Shown: positions 2,740 to 53,300 of the stretch, piece after piece
Layout of the letters: each line of letters opens with the position of its first letter
Numbering within the stretch: the first letter of the stretch is position 1
The notes under the pieces: generated by a model
Databases searched by the model: none
The model's input: only the letters and a program-made list of their open reading frames with translations
What the model was told of the DNA's origin: nothing
Made by a program: the position numbers and the translations under genes
NCBI RefSeq assembly: GCF_036588685.1
Contig: NC_086374.1
Location: 88,164,001 to 88,228,000 of the forward strand
DNA length: 64,000 nt
Direction of reading: 5' to 3'
From: Mytilus trossulus
Lineage: Eukaryota

Positions 2740-5700
2740 TTAAAGCAAATTGAAATTGAATTTAAAAAGTTTAAAACCTCATTGTCTTTGTCAATGGTTG
2801 ACAGAAAATTGGTTTTATAGTACATTGTATGCAAATTTGAAACGCTGTTGATGAAAAGAAAAAAACACTACTCTATCATGAATTGGTTGCCAGTTATGAA
2901 ATATCCATTTTACAGATGATATAGATATGCTCTGTATGTCGTATCTACAAAACCGTCCCTCTTTTTCGAAATTGACCTACCGAATAAGAGTTATTACCGG
3001 GTCTGTACTAAAAAAAGCTAAACATCTCAATTATCTCCATCACATTTTCATAAAAGAAATAATGTTAAGGTTATATTTTTACTGCAAGAGGATCAAAAGT
3101 GGTCTCTTAGTAATCAAAATGTGCTTCCCACCATTAAAGACGAAGAAACAAGATAAAATGTATCAATTCTGCTGAATGTATTCTCTCGTCTGAAAAACGA
3201 TCACCGTAACATTTATTCAAAAACCTTTATCATACAAACAAACGTTTGAAAAATGAATGTTTGGATTTTAAAAAAATCAGCAAATACCAATAGAACGGAA
3301 ATTAATTATAAGTCAACAAACATTAAACAATATAGTGGTGTGACATCGGATTGACAATGTCATTACTACTAAAAAGACAATTATATCCAATATACATATC
3401 TTTTAAAACTCTTGAATATTAAAGATCAGGTTTTTTTAATATAAAATATCGATGAAACTACATACTTCTAAATTCTAAATTCTAAATAATAAAATTAAGT
3501 ACAAAATATAAAACACTAGAAAACAAATAGAACTTTCCCTATATTAAAAACGATATATTGAAGATCATCGAAAATTTGGCGTATTTCAAATTAAACTTGG
3601 ATATGAAAATACACTTGCAATCCTATGATTAACTGATACTTCTTTAATTGTATATGATTAAGGTATCCTAAAATCTATATTGAAATGTATAATAAGCTTT
3701 TGACGTCTCCGTTTCTTTAAAACCAAAGAGTTGTCTCATTGGCGCGCACATCAAATAGTCTTACTGTCATATTTATCGTATGCTTTACAGATTTATATTT
3801 TTTGTAATGAGTACGGTGTTTTCAAAACTAGTTATTCAGAGAAAATCTTATTTCAACTGATACGACAGAAACAATTAAAATAAGACAAAAACATCTGCTT
3901 CAATTGTTAATATCTGAAATTTAACGGTTTTTTAGATTGTAATCGGGCTTCATATTTTTTTTGGTTTACTGGAATGATAATGACAACTGATATTACGTTT
4001 TTTTACCCTGAGGAAATCTGTACACTTGCAATACTTTTGAATTATTTTAATGAAGTAACCAATTAAAAAAAAGAATAATATTGTATGGACAATATTTTTG
4101 ATTATATGCAATTACGTTTATACATGGGAACTGCTATATCGGGTGTAAAATCACCTATTTTGTCCCCTTCTTTTCATTGCTATTATAACTGTCAGGTGCA
4201 CGCTTTGTATCGGTATAAACATTAAAAAAAAAATGCGGTATGATTCCACATGTCATTTTCAATCTGAGACCAAATGACCAATATGTAAGCAACTATACAT
4301 TCCCATCCGGAAGTTTACAATGATTCAAACCAATAACGCATAGCTGATATCTCTGTATTAAGCGTCAAGAAAACCCCATCCTACTTGTTAAAATTGTTCA
4401 TAATTCCGATTTTTTTACAAACTTAATCTATAAAAAAAATAAAATTGAAACAGTTAAATAAGGGATAACCTCTCCTGTAGTTGTGAATTCAGAGATATAC
4501 AATACTTTGAAATCGTTTATAAAGGGACTTAAAATTACACGTCCGGTCGGAATGGGGACGTTTAATCATACGCTTTGTGTTGTGAGAGTGACACGCTCTC
4601 TGTACGTTAAAGCATATTTGCAATAACACTGAGATGACTTTAGGTGATCTATATCTACGTTTATATTCCAGTGAGAGTTTAAATTTTACTCTCTTCCTTG
4701 GCAACCTACATAACGGATCTTTCTTATTGTAGTATTTGTTATTTCGGCCTGATTCTGCATGCATTATTTATCACTGGGAGTTAATAAATGAAAACAAAAT
4801 ATCAATCGATGTACAGTTTCATCGTCTAAAGACATTGTAAAAAGAGGGGCGAAAGATACCAGAGTTTCAGTCACACTCATACAACGAATATACACTGCCA
4901 ACTCAATGGCTAATAAAGAAAAAGATAAACAGACAAATAATAGTACACAAGACACAACATAGAAAACGAAAGACCAAGCAACACAAACACCACTTGCGAC
5001 CAAAAATTAACATCAAAAATATTGTTTCCAATGTATGAGAAATCGTAACAATTAGCATATGGAAACTTTAAAGTACACACAAATAAGGATCAACGTTATA
5101 TGTGAAAGGGAAAAGACCACAGGCGAACATTATTTAACCTATTTCAATAAAATATCAACGAATATAACAGAGAAATTAATTGATGTCAAACTTTTTTATT
5201 GCCTCGACAGAAAGTAAAGATCCTTAAATACCTCTGTGGTAGCTCAAGTTTATCTGTCAATTCAGTTGAGTAACTTCATTGCATCATGAAGAAAAATGTC
5301 ACCAGGGAATACAAAATATTGTACTTTAGATAATTAAAACTGGATAAAATTGCAGACGCATCAGTGTGATAAATACGACGACAAACTGCATGTTGATACT
5401 AAATGATATCTACAAAAGCAAAGAAATTATAAAAAAAACACAATTTCTATTTTATATGTAGTGTAAAGTGAGTTTGAATTGGTCCATAGTTTACTTTAAT
5501 TACATTTCATGGTTCTCTGCAGTTAAGGGAGCAAACGATTTTTCTTAGGATCGTTAAAGTATGGGGCTAACAATTTCTGTTTCTTACCTTGAGTTTCGGG
5601 ACCTAGAGCATAAATAACATTTTAACAGTAAAGGATTTCAGAAATCAAAATCTTTATACTTTTTTTTTTATAAAGCACTGTTTTCTTTTCCTTTCAAAAA

Positions 5701-24700: not shown

Positions 24701-27700
24701 GCCAATATATTACAAACCGAAACTCCAAGAAATCTTGTATTATTCATTGCTGAGTAAATTTCTCTTGTTACATCATTACTGTAATAGTCGAAATGTTCCA
24801 ACGATTTCTTCTGTTCCGCCAACCTGAAAATACAATTCTGCCATTATTCTCACTTTTGAATTTCGATTAAAATGTTCATTCACCAATTGATGACCACACA
24901 GTGATTATAATCATTAAAAACATACGAATAAAAGGAGATGTTGTTCGTCTCTAGTTATGTCTTCTGGTTATTTTGTCATTTAGTTGGCTAAGATTTGAGA
25001 GAAACTCATGGGTTTTGAAATTATCACTATTACAATTTGATTTTGAATTTGAGTTATTCGACATCACCGTGCCGTGAGATAGTCATATATAAAAAAAGAG
25101 ACCTCGACATGTGTGTCCAACTAGCTCAATAAAACTGGTTAAACAGAAACACTGTTTCAATATATATTTTAATGGCTAGCCATTAAACCAGATTCAACCC
25201 ACCATTTTTGTCTTAAAATGTCCTATCCCAAGTCAAGAATATGAAAGTTGTTATGAAATAGTTCTTTCTATGTATGTAAGCGTGTGTTTTTTGTTTTTTT
25301 GCACTTCAGTTTTACTGTTGTTCATTTTTTTTCATCTTATGGTTGATGTGTTTCCTCGGTTTTAGTTTTTAACCCGGATTCGTTTTCTCTGTATCGACTT
25401 ATGACCTTTAAACACCTGCATACTACAGTTGCCTTTTTATGTATTTGGTAAATTTTGGGTCCTCGTTGCTTTTCATTTCCTTATGTGGAAAATGATGGAA
25501 AAACCAACTGGTTTTATAACTAGCTAAACCTTTTCCATGGCTTTAAAAAGTAAAATAAGAAAAAATAGAAAAAGTAAAATAACAGAACCACCAAACTCAA
25601 GGAAAACTCAAAACGGAAAGTCCAGCAATGAATGGCAAAATCAAAAGCTCAAACAGATTGTTGTCAATTTAATGGAATTGTATGCGACAGTCTTACACGT
25701 GAGAGGTTTAGCTTGCTATCAAACCAGGTTTAATCCACCATTTTCTACATGAGAAAATGCCTGTATCAAGTCAGGAATATGACAGTTGTTGTTCATTCGT
25801 TTGATATGTTTGAGCTTTTGGGTTTCGATTGATTAGGGACTTTCCATTTTGAATTTTCCTCGGAGTTCAGTATTTTTGTGATTTTATCTTTTACACACCA
25901 AAAGAAAAGAAAACAGCTGTTATAAAACTTACTTGGTATAGGCATTTCCTTATGTAGAAAATAGTTGATTAAATCCCCGACTTATGTTGATATAAGAAGA
26001 TGTGATATGAGTGCCAATGTGACAACTCTCCATCCAAGTCACAAATTATACAAGTAAACCATTATTGGGCAAAATACGGTATTCAATACGGAGCCATGGA
26101 TTTATGAGTTTTGAATAGCGGTATACTACTGTTGCTTTTATTTATATGACATTCGCTAAACATTCAATTACATTGACAACAATGTGTGAATAAAACATAC
26201 AGCAGTCAACATTGTGTTATAATCTTAATGACTTTGGCGAATTGAGTTCTGGCTAAACAGTAGATATTCGAATCACTACAACCGTTGTTTTTCGTCAAAT
26301 GATTCATTTTTTACTTTGACTTGCACAAAGTGGAACTCATCCCCATCAACCCCACCCCAAACAATGACTGACATAATTATATTTATGATTCCCTCTATTT
26401 TAAGACAAATGGGATAAATATAATCAACAGTCAACAAAAAGTGTAAGAGGAAGTCATCATTACAGCGTTAAATTACATTATGTTGAGGAATGATGCCATC
26501 GTCTATTCAATAATTTTAAATGATTGAAATAAACTATCTTAATGGCATTTTTCTATAATTAATTTTTTTTCTTAAGATCACTCAATCAATAAAGATCCAT
26601 GCATACATTTCTTAGGAATTCCTCTGGCACTTTTCATGACTATGGACATTTGAAAAAAACTTTAAGTTGTCAGAACATTATTCTGTATAAGTAATAAATT
26701 ATAAATGTATTCACTAAAATCAAATGTATACTTCGAAAACAATTTTAAATGCTTCAAATTTATCTGAAACTTAATTGGAAAGACAATCACAACAGAAATT
26801 AAACTTAAAACAATTCTTAATTCCGATTAATCGTTTTCAAATTGACATTTATTCCTATTGGTGGCGGTGGACATTCGTTGCAAAACAGCTTACTGTTGGT
26901 GTGAGTCAAGGCTCCGTGTTAAATACCGTATTTTGCCCAATAATGGTTTACTTGTATAATTTGTGACTTGGATGGAGAGTTGTCACATTGTCACTCATAT
27001 CACATCTTCTTATATCAATAAGTTTACAATTTCGGATAAATTGTGTTTTGACAAGCCATGCTTAATGCTAATTAATTTATAAATACGTGTATATGTTAAA
27101 TAGCAGAAGAATATTTAAAGTATGTTACATAGAATCTGTGATATTAAATTGCTGTCTGTTTTAAACCCATGAGTGAACTCAAATGAGGGCATTGTACATA
27201 TGTTTTACTAACCAACATATTCTTCATGGTAAAGAAGTATATTTAGCAAAGTCGATATCAGTCTGGTTTGTTTCGGATCCATTAAAGTATTTTCATTTTT
27301 TGAACAGTGTATGACCAGTTTAAAGGATATACAGCAATACTGTTTCTATGAAGAGACAGCAAGTAATTGATCAATTGAGAAACATCCGAACGCTTCTGAG
27401 TAATCTTCATCTTATTTTTGTTACTGTTATTGCGCTCTGTACATGTCATAACTTCATCACAACAAAGAGCGTATCAATGCTGTTCATTGAGGTTGACACA
27501 TGTCTTTCAAAATATCAATTAAATTCTAATAACCTTTAAAATTGAGCTTCACATTTCATGATCTAACAGAGAAGTTATACAATTAGCTTGAGATTGATTT
27601 TTAACACTATGAACGCTGCCTTTAATTCGATTTCATAGAATAAATAAGTGACAGTGTAAACTTAGAAAACTCTTAAAGTGCTTTGATTTACTTATGTAAC

Positions 27701-44300: not shown

Positions 44301-47300
44301 AGAAACAATAATACACGTGTCCCTAGTCGAATAAAAAATGTCAAAGATATATTTTGCTGGGAACAAATATACTTTGATTTCTATGAGCACTTTGAAGTAA
44401 TGCCTATTTACCACCATATTCCAAATCATCATCTATTTCCCTACGTATTTGTCAATTTAGCCATACGCTCCTCAACAAATATTCTTGGTTTCGATAAAAA
44501 TAAGAAGTAATGGAATGAAATAAAACTGCATGTTTGCGCAAAAAATATATAGTACAATAAAATTGAGAATGGAAATTGGGAATGTGTCAAAGAGACAACA
44601 ACCCGACAAAAATAAAAAAAAACACAACAGCAGAAGGTCACCAACAGGTCTTCAATGTAGCGAGAAATTCCCGCATCCGGAGGCGTCCTTCAGCTGGCCC
44701 CTAAACAAATATATACTAGTTCAGTGATAATGAACGCCATACTAATTTCCAAATTGTACACAAGAAACTAAAATTTAAATAATACAAGACTAACAAAGGC
44801 CAGAGGCTCCTGACTTGGGACAGGCGCAAAAATGCGGCGGGGTTAAACATGTTTGTGAGATCTCAACCCTCCCCCTATACCTCTAACCAGTGTAGAAAAG
44901 TAAAAGCATAACAATACGCACATTAAAATTCAGTTCAAGAGAAGTCCGAGTCTGATGTCAGAAGATGTAACCAAAGAAAATAAACAAAATGACAATAATA
45001 CATAAATAACAAGAGACTACTAGCAGTTAACTGACATGCCAGCTCCAGACTTCAATTAAACTGACTGAAAGATTATGATTTCATCATATGAACATCAGGC
45101 ACAATCCTTCCCGTAAGGGGTTTAGTATCATACCATCATAAAATATATGAGAAGAACATAACCCGTGTCATGCCAACAACTGTTTTTAGAATAAATGTGT
45201 TTAGTTCCGACGCAAAGACCTTATCAGTGACTCAATATTAACGCCAAAATATGCAATCTTTAATGACTTGACAACAGTATCGTAATTATATCCCTTCTTA
45301 ATAAGTCTATTCAAAGGTTTTGTAAGTTTATGAGGTGAATACTGACACCTTTGTGCTTTATAAAGAATATTTCCATAAAAAAATGGATGTGAAATACCTG
45401 AACGTATAAAAAGTCTGCATGTTGAGCTATATTTACGAATGATGTCTTTATACCGATGATACAATTTAGTAAATGTTTTGACTAGTTTGTGATATCGAAA
45501 ACCCTGGTGTAATAATTTTTCAGTAATACATAAATTTCTTTCGTTAAAATCTAAAACATTGTTACATACACGAGCGAATCGTACAAGTTGAGATATATAA
45601 ACACCGTAAGATGGTGACAAGGGAACGTCACCATCTAAAAACGGATAATTAACGATAGGAAATGAAAAATCATCCCTTTTATCATAAATTTTAGTATTCA
45701 GCTTTCCGTTAGTGATATAGATATCAAGATCGAGGAAAGGGCAGTGGTCATTGTTAGTATTAGCTTTATTTAAAGTAAGTTCACCAGGATAAATTTCATT
45801 AATATACATACTGAAGTCGTCATTATTGAGAGCCAAAATATCATCCAAATATCTAAAAGTATTATTAAATTTGTTTATCAGATGTTGTTTTGATGGGTCT
45901 TTGCTTATTTTTGTCATAAATTGTAACTCGTAACAATACAAAAAGAGGTCCGCAATAAGTGGTGCACAGTTAGTCCCCATTGGAATTCCGATAATCTGAC
46001 GATATACGGAATCCCCAAAGCGAACAAAAATGTTATCTAGTAAAAATTCAAGGGCATATATAGTATCAAAGCATGTCCAATTAACATAGTTTTTTTGTTT
46101 ATTGCTACTAAAAAATGACCTAAAAGAGTTTGAACATATATATTCACATTCTGACTACTTACTTTTAAATTTCGTACGGCATTCGTTGGGTCAGTAAGGA
46201 AGTTTTGTCTAACAGAGACCTCTATACCAGCTTTTTTAACCCTTTCCTCCAAATCTTCTACTGTCTGAAATATCGAAGCATTTTACCATATAATGCCAAA
46301 TAAGTGAATATTTCTTTTTATCATTTCTTGTATTTTATTTAATTTTATTCTCAATATAATAATTACAGAAATAAAGGCAAGAGTAGTATATATCCCTGTT
46401 CAAAAGTCATAAATCGATTGAGAGAAAACAAACCCGGGGTAAACTCAAACCGAGGGATACACAACAATTATATAAAAAAAACCATCATCAACTGAAACAT
46501 TGAACTGCAACAAACAAACAAAAACGCCAATAAACATTGAAACGGACAATTGTTACAACTGTCAGAAAAGTGACCCAACAGTTATCAGTATTCCATAAGT
46601 GACTACAGAATTAGAATAAAACTTAATATAAAAAGAGAAAATGTGGTATGATTGCAAATGAGACAGCTCTCAACAAGAGACCAAAATGACACACAAATTA
46701 AGCATGTTTATGAAACGAACCAGATCAATCCTTTGTGTTTCGTGTCAATTTATCAATTTATTTAAAACAAAAACTATAATTTCGTAACTAAATATTCAGC
46801 AACCAAAAAAATGTTATTGTCTTTCAATCGTTTTCCGTTTTTCACCATAGTGCTCTCAGTTTGTTTTAGACTTGTAAGTTTGTACGTCTCCTTGATATCT
46901 TCTGCCTATCTATTTGTATCAATTTCACTTATGTACACTAGTATAATGAAACTTGCCGCTATTGAACTAAATTACTTACTTTTCTTAATTGAATGCATAT
47001 TTATATAAGTTCACTCTGTAGTACTGAATGTTATCAAAATAGAAATTATAGCTTCAATGCAAGAGCATCTATTAAAGTGCTGACAGTCTAATCATTTACC
47101 AATGCGTTTATTTACAAGGTGATGCGAGGTCTTATCCATAAATGGATTGTAAAATGGGTACTGTAATCCAACAAGAGTAAAAACAACATCTTTGTATTGC
47201 AAACATTCTGAATAGTAATGACAATTAAGACCTCGGACATCACCCTCACCATTAGGACACTACAATGTAGTACAATTGAACTTTCCTTACAAAGATGATA

Positions 47301-50300: not shown

Positions 50301-53300
50301 CCATGGATACACCCAAAAGAAATTATATTTATAATTATATGAAATCTATGGAAGATTCTGATTACATACATATGCCCATATATGACACAAACAGTAAGCT
50401 TGATATTACAAGAAAGCAATGAAAAGGGGATGGTAAAATTTATAAGGGCAAATTTTAATATTTTTTCCTAACTGTTTATTGCTACATAACCTTTCAAACA
50501 GGAAAACCAACGGTCCAGTCTATCTCAAAATCGAGAAACACTTATGAACCCCAGCAACGAACTATAACCACTGAACAACAGGTTTCTGGCATATGGCCGG
50601 TGCAACCAAATGCAGCAAGTTTGAACATTTTAACAGGCTCCAACCCTTCGCCCTAACCTGACGTAATGGTTTTACATCGCAATATAGAAAGACACACTAT
50701 AGAATATCAATTGAAATGGCTTTAGTCAATCATAAACACTTGTGAATCACAACAACAAAGGTTCACCACTGAACATCAATTTCCTGCCATAGGAGAGGTA
50801 CACACAAATGCAGAGGGTATAAAAGTGTTAACAGGCTCCAAACGTAACCCTAATCTGACGTAGTGGTGTTACATCACAATATAGAAAAACACACTATAGA
50901 ATATAAATTGGAAGGGCTTTATTCAATCAAAAACACTTATGAATCCCATTAACAAATAACAACCACTGAACATCAGTTTCCTGCCATAGGCCAGATGGAA
51001 ATCAATGTTCTCTTACCATATTTCCCGATAATGATAAATTCAGGGATTCAACCAACCTAGTCCTAGTTTCATGCGTCGTAAGGTGAACTTAATTAGAGAC
51101 AGCTGTAGTTGTTCAAATAAATGTAATCAACTAAGAACATACTAAATCAAGATAACAACACAACAAGGTATAAACTCGCAAAGGAACAGACCGGTTCGTG
51201 GACAAAGTCTTTTATAATTAAAGTAATTGACTTAGTTGTTAGTATGGAAGGGATGACTGATATTATATCAAAACAGTTCAGGTACTTTGATCTAACATTT
51301 TTTTTCATATTTCGTAAATCAATTAAGAAAAGACAAATTAAGTTACAAATAAGAACAGAGCAATCGCATGAACTCCAAAAGGAGCAAGACCACGTGCTTT
51401 GCCATGATAAGCGTCTTCTACTATGCAGGCATCATCGGCATCGGTCTTTAATCATATTAGACCGCGAAGTCTTGTCGTTAGAGAGTTGAGACATCGGTCA
51501 ATACAGAACAGTATAAAAACGCGAGTGTCTCCTGTTTAAAACACCAAAACTATTCTTGAAGCAATAAATTTCATGTCATTGACCAAAAGGTTTTATATAA
51601 TCAATTATAAAAAAAAATCAAAAAGTCAAGGAATATGTATATATACATTTCCTGTTTCTAAACAATCTGTTTATCAGTCAAAGATAGTTATCTGGAGAAT
51701 GTGGGTACATATAAGAGCCGTGGTGTAGTGGTTAGTGCATCGGACTACTAACACAAAGGTCCCTGGTTCAATTCCCGTTATGGACTGAATTTTCGGCTCT
51801 CCCTTGACACCATTTGCGAGTATGGTCTTGAGGAAACGATGATAGTCCGTCGGAAGGTGACGATAAATGACTGACCCGTGTTAAGAGAGATTCATATCTC
51901 TTGCACGTTAAAGACACCCTTGTAGATTTCGAAAAAGAGCAGGCTAATGCCGCTACAAGACAGCACTCGCACCTGCAAAGTGGAAAGGGATTAATGTAAG
52001 TTGCAAAACTTGTTTCCCAATCCACTATAAATAAATCTGGAATACGATACAGTAGCAGGGGCAGATAATAACGTTTTCAAAACTTTTCGTGTTGTTTTCG
52101 CGACGTTGGTAACCAGAACGTTGTAATTTCGCGATGTTTCTAATAAGAACGTTAACATTTCGCGACGTCGCTTTAAAAGAAGTCATATTTCGCGGAATGT
52201 TCACTGACGTCATTAATTTCGGTTGCGCGAATTTCAAAAAAGTACCTGCTAAAAAAGTGGCCATGCCGTTTCTAAAAGACGGAGAAATCCGCCGAACAGC
52301 AGTGAGACTAAAGGAAATACTTGAGATGTACAAACATAAATCAAATACAATTTTGCATGACAAAATTGAAGAAATGGTGATAGACACAGAAGAGAGTACT
52401 GACAGTATAACATGAAAAGACGAAAGAATTGTGGAGCTTTTTAGTCTGGCACTGAATAACTGCCAAAACTGCACTTCCCAGTGGAATCTGCTCAACGTAG
52501 AGAAAGAAAAATTACAAGGAATTGGGGTCTATCTTACTATTCGTTGCTTGAACTGTAACATGCTGAAAAACATTTTACCAATAACACAATTCGGAACAAA
52601 ACGACCTGCAATAGCTAATTATGAGTATTGGTAGCTGCTTAATGTCCAGCGGCAAATATACATCCAAATGTTATTTTAATGAAACTTAAAGAAATGAGAA
52701 AACGTATGAACCCGTGATTAATGAGAAAAAATTAACAAAATCTATGGCGCGTAGACATGGTGGCTGAATCGGGTCTGGTATTAAAATCCATACACATAAG
52801 TCATTACTACGGCGTGTTGTAGAGCTGTGCAATATTTTTCATGACGAGCAGAGTTATTTTTATCAATTGATAATGAATTTCGAAGTAAATAATACTATCT
52901 TGAATTGAAAAACATCAGAATCAAAATAGTTAAGTTTGTGTCTTTTTTTTTCTTTTCTTGTTTAGCATTTGGAAGCCTCCAAATTTTACGGAGAATTGTC
53001 ATTGTAAGGTCAAAAACAGACTATCAATGAAATAACAAAACCGACTGCATGTGCGAGACCCTCATTGGTGGACAAGGTCGTATAACACACATATTGGTAA
53101 ATAAAAAAATAACTAAAGAGAGTGTATCATCCTGTTCTGGACTTGAAATTGGTACATAAAAAAGAAATGCCGATATAAATTCATATTTTAAAAACATAGT
53201 ATTGTATGTGTACGTAGAAAAACTGTCATTAAAAGTCCGTTAAAAAGATTTCAAAAAAATATATTGGTGTCGTTTTTGGTTTGAATTTAAGCAAAATATT

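Follow-up and report, generated by a model that had tools for sequence, protein, structure and literature searches.

A twister-fold module with two palindromes at the place of stem P1 in the 3′ untranslated region of Naiad-clade Penelope-like retroelements

A stretch of 64,000 nucleotides (nt) of the Mytilus trossulus genome (NCBI RefSeq assembly GCF_036588685.1, contig NC_086374.1, positions 88,164,001 to 88,228,000 of the forward strand), which is called the window here, carries on its minus strand an RNA module resembling the twister ribozyme, located in the 3′ untranslated region (UTR) of a truncated Penelope-like retroelement of the Naiad clade. With high confidence we regard it as a real and conserved module of the twister fold, in which stem P1 is replaced by a double palindrome. 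The best joint explanation of the data, to which moderate confidence is given, is that a type-P5 twister with a P3 hairpin and both pseudoknots is inherited as a part of the Naiad 3′ UTR or pseudo-LTR (long terminal repeat), that it would be cut at a predicted site and that two copies would pair through its palindromes.

Fold of the module and its covariation

All coordinates are positions of the window; the module has 91 bases and is read on the minus strand from 44888 to 44798. Every part of a twister is present in this interval in the order of type P5, that is P5, P2, GAGGG, UAA, GCC, P3, P4 and the loop UCCCAAGU, and the conserved twister stretches UAA, GAGGG, GCC and UCCCAAG are all found. 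The parts and coordinates had been read earlier from the letters alone by a model (the original prediction), and they agree base for base with the sequence. They are as follows.

44879-44888, minus strand: P5 5′ strand GGUUAGAGGU, partner GCCUCUGGCC at 44807-44798
44878-44876, minus strand: junction AUA between P5 and P2
44872-44875, minus strand: P2 3′-side strand GGGG, partner CCCC at 44839-44842
44867-44871, minus strand: GAGGG strand, with G44871 as the presumed catalytic guanine and GGG (44869-44867) as T1
44856-44865, minus strand: palindrome 1, UGAGAUCUCA, at the position of the P1 3′ strand
44845-44854, minus strand: palindrome 2, AAACAUGUUU, ending at U-1, at the position of the P1 5′ strand
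44844-44845, minus strand: predicted scissile bond U44845^A44844 (U-1 is 44845, A+1 is 44844), homologous to the twister U-A site (PMC8501958, PMC5408937)
44839-44842, minus strand: P2 5′-side strand CCCC, partner GGGG at 44875-44872
44836-44838, minus strand: GCC, with G44838 and C44837 in T2 and C44836 closing P3
44825-44835, minus strand: P3 hairpin GCA-UUUUU-UGC-G, with the pairs C44836/G44825, G44835/C44826, C44834/G44827 and A44833/U44828
44809-44824, minus strand: P4 CCUG/CAGG with loop L4 UCCCAAGU (CCUG 44824-44821, loop 44820-44813, CAGG 44812-44809)
44798-44808, minus strand: junction A44808 and P5 3′ strand GCCUCUGGCC, after P4

The P5 helix GGUUAGAGGU/GCCUCUGGCC has 10 base pairs, three of them G-U, and a duplex energy of -20.3 kcal/mol against -8.5 kcal/mol in shuffles. 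The T1 pseudoknot can be formed by GGG (44869-44867) with the loop CCC (44819-44817), and T2 by G44838-U44813 together with C44837-G44814; both pairings had been proposed in the original prediction, and besides being possible in the sequence both covary among the relatives. The folding energy is mildly unusual in comparison with shuffles (z = -2.15), and the minimum-energy fold adopts a rival helix of GGGUUGAG with UUUAACCC.

In a normal twister the stretch immediately 5′ of the cut and that immediately 3′ of GAGGG pair with each other as P1. In the module the strand after GAGGG and the strand before U-1 are not mutually complementary, and the linker of 21 nt between GAGGG and A+1 contains two perfect palindromes, which are the two self-complementary 10-mers previously named as the replacement of P1. 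The first G of GAGGG (G44871) is taken by us to be the equivalent of G45 of the rice twister. With this correspondence, the earlier assignment of G44871 as the catalytic G and of A44844 as A+1 fits the rice numbering, in which the catalytic G45 is conserved and the adenine is A7 (PMC5408937).

The fold is retained through compensatory changes in P2, P3, P4, P5, T1 and T2 among element families from this genome and from marine metagenomes, whose reverse transcriptases (RT) are 40-99% identical. Ascertainment accounts for some of the pairing counted below, since P2 and P4 were demanded by the search descriptors and P2, P3 and P4 are built into the covariance model; no search model asked for T1, T2, P5 or the palindromes. 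In a set of 11 families 97.3% of the cells were paired and 17 of the 24 pairs change on both sides, while none of 500 shuffles was as high and slid controls were 32-47% paired. With 31 sequences the paired cells came to 92.7%, and 19 of the 24 pairs change on both sides. Covariation among family copies was something on which the original prediction had made itself depend, and it is strong in both sets; as the families are independent and every helix and both pseudoknots show compensatory changes, the twister reading itself is upheld.

At the level of single elements, P2 occurs as GGGG/CCCC, GGGA/UCCC, GGGC/GCCC and GUGU/ACAC, and P4 as CCUG/CAGG, GCAG/CUGC, GCUG/CAGC and ACCG/CGGU. All six pairs of P3 change on both sides, its sequence being unrelated between families, and P5 is wholly different in sequence in each family with its pairing significant in 11 of 11 (p <= 0.016). 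The T1 pairs change from GC to AU, UA or GU, and the first T2 pair is CG in 11 cells, AU in 9, GU in 7, UG in 2 and GC in 1, with none unpaired in 30. Three loci, L077, L078 and L107, were first found with three core 'mismatches', all of which proved to be compensatory and lie in P2 (GGGA/UCCC), in T1 (GAAGG with loop UCCUAAG, and GAGGA with loop UUCCAAGG, each giving A-U) and in the P3-closing pair (GCU...A for GCC...G). Apart from the module, blastn finds nothing significant in common between the UTRs of distant families; a conservation profile from multiple alignment of the UTRs was weakly informative, and pairwise blastn was clearer. Covariation in the midst of otherwise dissimilar UTRs is the signature of a selected twister fold.

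Host element, copies and distribution of the module

The classification of the host was based on the motifs described in PMC8557442, by which Naiads are defined through an N-terminal GIY-YIG, a CxC motif and a change of DKG to DKA (Craig et al. 2021). Judged by these motifs (GIY-YIG, CxC and DKA), the host is a selenoprotein-type Naiad-clade element, which bears out the Penelope-like host named at the outset. Three features of it lie in the window.

44556-46154, minus strand: 5′-truncated Naiad-clade copy with the RT coding end and the 3′ UTR, delimited by blastn, with a fixed 3′ end
45201-45980, minus strand: remnant of the open reading frame (ORF), the C-terminal RT part (MGTNCAPL..., YLDD), with 4,423 homologues
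45085-45149, minus strand: selenocysteine insertion sequence (SECIS), about 52-116 nt past the stop codon (Rfam SECIS_1, 34.0 bits against a cut-off of 35, E = 1.9e-5)

What remains of this copy in the window is the RT end, the SECIS, the twister and the tail, and the N-terminal GIY-YIG part is missing from it. The module begins about 312 nt past the stop codon of this truncated copy, in agreement with the 3′ UTR location given before. The full coding region was seen in the long copies L031 and L073 (metagenome contig), each with one long frame broken only by TGA codons. Upstream of the RT they have an N-terminal GIY-YIG-like block (..IIYLLT[TGA]NKPGCGIQYVGETGR..EH); the CxC motif is present as CNC, the DKA motif appears as ..PADKAANN.. 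and ..PADKAANNIIIV[TGA], and the RT motifs are LPKLHK and YLDD. Full copies have three in-frame TGA codons at conserved cysteine positions reported for Naiads; in the Naiads of clams and spiders UGA is found at the cysteine before GIY-YIG and at the cysteine 8 amino acids after DKA (PMC8557442). Pfam and PDB profile searches of the proteins of the element gave no useful matches, GIY-YIG included.

The SECIS_1 matches of the relatives score 28-33 bits. The possibility that the motif is itself the SECIS was rejected, the SECIS being separate at 45085-45149. Beside it, at 45040-45095 on the minus strand, there are weak matches resembling C/D-box small nucleolar RNAs (AUGAUGA ... CUGA; 14-17 bits, far under threshold), which were probably set off by kink-turn-like AUGA/UGA motifs.

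The blastn comparison with 30 other genomic copies showed that their 3′ end is fixed near 44556 and that their 5′ ends vary. Copy length reaches about 3.67 kb, or about 4.0 kb with a 342-nt leader that is seen in a tandem pair. In the long copies only about 23 nt separate the 5′ boundary from the start of the ORF, so transcription must begin upstream. L033 and L082 have a further tail before the ORF, as a tandem or pseudo-LTR. In the metagenome contig L082 the module and about 160 nt of tail flank the ORF on both sides (3-81 and 4184-4262); the two flanks are 95% identical across 240 nt, and the unit is 4,181 nt long. In L033:1087-8857 two copies of the window's family stand head to tail and the module of the upstream copy precedes the next ORF; each copy is preceded by the last ~173 nt of the tail and by the 342-nt leader, which is absent from the L031 copy, and one of the two has an internal deletion. 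The pseudo-LTR layout is where canonical Penelope-like elements carry their hammerheads (PMC6765202).

The genome-wide search was done with the pattern GAGGG-N(4-34)-TAANNNNGCC-N(3-33)-TCCCAAG, which fixes only core bases and leaves the helices free. It gave 9,519 matches in the 1.3 Gb genome against one for the reversed control, and the resemblance to the twister core exceeds chance. At least 40 copies identical to the 111 bases around the motif exist (of 499 candidates, the best 40 were scored). Among the genome-wide matches, G000:C1:6904974-6905034 and G000:C2:102083462-102083527 belong to further families with other first palindromes (UGGCGCCA, GGUACC) and other P3 sequences. The window itself has two more matches of the twister model. 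At 25699-25775 on the plus strand there is a second, more diverged one (38 bits, core GAGGU, loop UAUCAAGU) with decayed palindromes and no clear P5, probably an old copy of another Naiad family; at 50783-50850 on the minus strand a third, weak match (32 bits) has several core changes (GUUACG, loop UCCUAUGG) and looks decayed.

For the distribution outside this genome, contigs of JGI and other metagenomes were searched with the RT protein, blind to RNA, and 80 loci of 38-99% identity were obtained. The strict core was detected in 5 of them and mismatch-tolerant searches found 8 and then 11; a pairing-based descriptor gave 12 genuine loci and two spurious ones against 2 control matches. A covariance model (R1) built from the 11 families then placed the module in more than 30 loci with E <= 2e-5, with hits on the sense strand, and all its matches near the RT end are downstream of the RT/ORF. 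Four matches of R1 lie elsewhere, namely L082:3-81, L101, L127 and a weak minus-strand match in L129. When the loci are placed on the RT tree, eight of eight in the closest clade have the module downstream of their RT, as do 15 of the 16 that make up the sister clade; branches farther away have it too (L140 and L129 within the tree; L125, L127 and L119 outside it). In most copies of the sister clade GAGG-UU replaces GAGGG-U, the loop is UUCCAAGG or UGCCAAGG, T2 is CC/GG and the second position of P2 is recurrently unpaired; P3, P4, P5 and both palindromes are retained in these deviant-core copies. In L128 and L130 the contigs end 6-7 nt past P4, inside the P5 3′ strand, which is probably an assembly break at a repeat and not the predicted cut.

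A chance resemblance to a twister, sitting inside a repeat without any function, has been weighed against these data. It would agree with Rfam models that stay under their thresholds, and a high copy number alone would mean no more than transposition. It has to face compensatory changes in six structural elements down to an RT identity of about 40%, the presence of the module downstream of the ORF in every match near the RT end and the single match of the reversed control. The covariation in practice already refutes this idea, which we find hardly credible.

Palindromes, pairing of two copies and the predicted cut

Both palindromes are retained in nearly all families, and their sequences change. 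Palindrome 1 takes the forms GAGAUCUC, GGGAUCCC, GAGCGCUC, GGGCCC, GGAUCC, ACGCGCGU, GCAGCUGC, GGGCGCCC, GUGCGCAC, GGCAUGCC and others, with AU, CG, GC or UA as its central dinucleotide; a palindrome of at least 8 nt is kept in 26 of the 31 sequences, and its symmetric pairs change on both sides in four of five cases among the 11 families and in five of five among the 31 sequences. Palindrome 2 occurs as AACAUGUU, AACUAGUU, AACCGGUU, AACGUU and AACUGGUU and ends at N-1 or N-2; its centre changes (CAUG, CUAG, CCGG, ACGU, CUGG) and the self-complementarity is kept.

An even palindrome cannot form its central pairs in a hairpin. The linker or P1 region alone has a folding energy of 0 to -3 kcal/mol, and the self-duplex of palindrome 1 has -14 to -23 kcal/mol. 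Since the palindromes covary in such a way that they remain palindromic, pairing between two RNAs is favoured. Some of them are symmetric solely through G-U pairs (AAACUGGUUU in L107 and L089, UGGGAUCCCG in family B), and this favours pairing of RNA over DNA. From such patterns the palindromes are best read as dimer contacts, which is our inference; dependence of the module on a dimer is possible, with a likelihood that we put a little short of even.

According to the favoured explanation, the module is inherited and conserved within the 3′ UTR, or pseudo-LTR, of Penelope-like elements of the Naiad clade and holds the position which the hammerhead has in canonical ones. Its transcription is on the sense strand, and U44845 and A44844 flank its predicted cut. 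Two copies, either two RNAs or two units of one tandem transcript, most likely pair through their palindromes, and folding or cleavage would then be coupled to the formation of this dimer, as in the minimal dimeric hammerheads found in other elements of the Penelope-like group. The most probable role is the processing of read-through or tandem transcripts, perhaps confined to modules that have paired; where elements stand in tandem or have a pseudo-LTR, cleavage would trim a read-through transcript upstream of the ORF that follows. Catalysis by the module is judged fairly probable. Twister cleavage does not need P1, and U-1 is the less conserved base (PMC5408937); the absence of P1 is hence no argument against activity.

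Several results weigh against this explanation. In the Rfam scan at gathering score no family reaches its threshold anywhere in the window or in 20 relatives, and the type-P5 twister model has no match in either; the twister models compared were RF03160, RF02684 and RF03154. In E-value mode the single twister signal of the window is an incomplete match of the twister-P1 model, spanning P3, P4 and L4 (13.3 bits, E = 9.8), and the twister scores of the relatives are 20-24 bits, the best being 24.1 (L107), against a gathering score of 67.2. The original prediction had offered the Rfam twister models as a check, with a lack of hits to count against it; this check went partly against it, as the twister-P1 matches are incomplete and under threshold and the P5 model has none. 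The low scores are explained by the models expecting a P1 hairpin, and the module has none. On the genome the twister-P5 model gave three weak and unrelated places (only 79 of 26,711 candidates scored), which is uninformative, and for the hammerhead there was no Rfam match in the window or in the 20 relatives.

The other adverse results concern the copies and the relatives. Copies that start exactly at A+1 are rare: of 100 listed copies with a base other than U at -1, about 2-4 have unrelated upstream sequence. A pile-up of genomic copies at the predicted cut was looked for and none was found. Given the rarity of such starts, new insertions are not commonly templated by cut 3′ fragments, and all genomic copies retain about 250 nt beyond the module, from which it follows that the RNA serving as template was uncut there. 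Model R1 did not find the module in several distant Naiad-like loci. Many relatives have a deviant core, with GAGG-UU, a recurrent N-C mismatch in P2 and U-U in T1, and the activity of these deviant-core relatives is doubtful. Two-copy dimers were also modelled with RNAcofold and were set aside, as they are generic domain swaps that any such set of hairpins gives and have no evidential value.

Some of these points can be read in favour of a fold without catalysis, whether lost or never used, in which the module is a structured element of the 3′ UTR, for example a site recognised by the RT in target-primed reverse transcription, or a dimer-linkage signal built from the palindromes. The lack of an excess of copies starting at A+1, the extension of all genomic copies about 250 nt past the module, the imperfect cores of many relatives and palindromes kept as well as the core all agree with it. 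This non-catalytic account has to explain why A+1, the first G of GAGGG and the loop L4 are kept where the helices have fully diverged, for an exact twister active site is needless in a structure that merely binds a protein or dimerises; we therefore consider it rather unlikely.

Another account accepts catalysis and gives the palindromes a different work. The module would then be an active, monomeric 'mini-twister' without P1, and its palindromes would be non-catalytic, serving RNA pairing for an RT template switch that leads to tandem or pseudo-LTR copies, or serving as a site at the DNA level. This is compatible with P1 being dispensable for twister cleavage (PMC5408937), with the existence of tandem and pseudo-LTR arrangements and with the likeness of the palindromes to symmetric sites of 6-10 bp. 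The palindromes that are symmetric by G-U pairs alone (AAACUGGUUU, UGGGAUCCCG) point to RNA and speak against its DNA version, and the location of the palindromes exactly at both P1 strand positions, beside the active site, suggests a link with the ribozyme. We see this monomeric account as distinctly improbable.

The favoured explanation, an inherited type-P5 module with a predicted cut and a likely dimer, admits a stronger form which is put forward tentatively. In this form Naiads would carry an obligately dimeric twister, in which each P1 strand pairs with its twin in a second RNA, and cutting and dimer linkage would be one device. If true, the device would sense tandem or paired transcripts, and it could explain the tandem and pseudo-LTR copies by the RT switching from one linked template to the other. 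A dimeric twister would thereby be seen in nature for the first time, and Penelope-like elements would have recruited a dimer-dependent ribozyme a second, independent time.

Relation to known systems

Naiads have tens of thousands of copies and dominate the genomes of bivalves and other invertebrates (PMC8557442). They were reported without canonical hammerheads, and twisters are nowhere mentioned in that report (Craig et al. 2021, PMC8557442); the hammerhead-free Naiads prompted the suggestion that ribozymes are dispensable for Penelope-like elements or parasitic on them (PMC8557442). Should the equivalent place in Naiads be occupied by a twister, terminal-repeat ribozymes that cleave themselves would be a general and convergently maintained feature of Penelope-like elements. 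Few functions have so far been assigned to the twister class, and the module would give twisters a large natural setting. The original prediction knew of no description of twisters in Penelope-like elements, and the literature search, judged partly from titles and abstracts, likewise yielded no paper linking a twister to Naiad or Penelope-like elements. Twisters of bivalves have been predicted computationally, without genomic context (PMC11662667).

The host resembles the selenoprotein Naiads of clams and spiders (PMC8557442) in its N-terminal GIY-YIG, CxC and DKA motifs, its UGA positions, its SECIS in the 3′ UTR and its very high copy number; no ribozyme was reported in those elements. The hammerheads of Penelope-like elements include minimal forms in which the cleaving species is a dimer (Cervera and de la Pena 2014; Lunse et al. 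2017, both as cited in PMC6765202). The module is like them in being a small motif of the self-cleaving type in the pseudo-LTR or 3′ region, with cleavage predicted in its own case, and like the minimal ones in that a weakened palindromic stem would permit two copies to pair and that tandem arrangements occur in the host. It is unlike them in belonging to the twister class and to the Naiad clade, and in having two separate palindromes where the hammerheads have one palindromic stem-loop.

In Schistosoma mansoni, Perere-3/RTE non-LTR retrotransposons carry twister variants, called T-variants, at the 5′ end (PMC8501958; PMC7761336). The T-variants too are twister-derived motifs on a retrotransposon with an unconventional P1, and are thought to process co-transcripts. 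They differ in lying at the 5′ end of RTE-type LINEs (long interspersed nuclear elements), as well as in taking P1 partly from the target-site duplication, whereas the module is found some 250-340 nt away from the 3′ end of a GIY-YIG/RT element, with palindromes standing for P1. A mini-twister without P1 still cleaves (Kosutic et al. 2015, as cited in PMC5408937); unlike the module it is an engineered truncation without palindromes and not a natural class.

The closest known structure is the type-P5 twister (RF02684, clan CL00120), with which the module shares the order of its parts (open at P5, then P2, UAA and GAGGG, GCC, an optional P3, and P4 with UCCCAAG), both pseudoknots T1 and T2 and the U-A site. 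It departs from that type by its 21-nt double-palindrome linker in place of P1, by failing the Rfam gathering score and by sitting in the UTR of a retroelement in thousands of copies. A type-P5 twister whose P1 is exchanged for two covarying palindromes is a defined variant, which can be tested at the bench.

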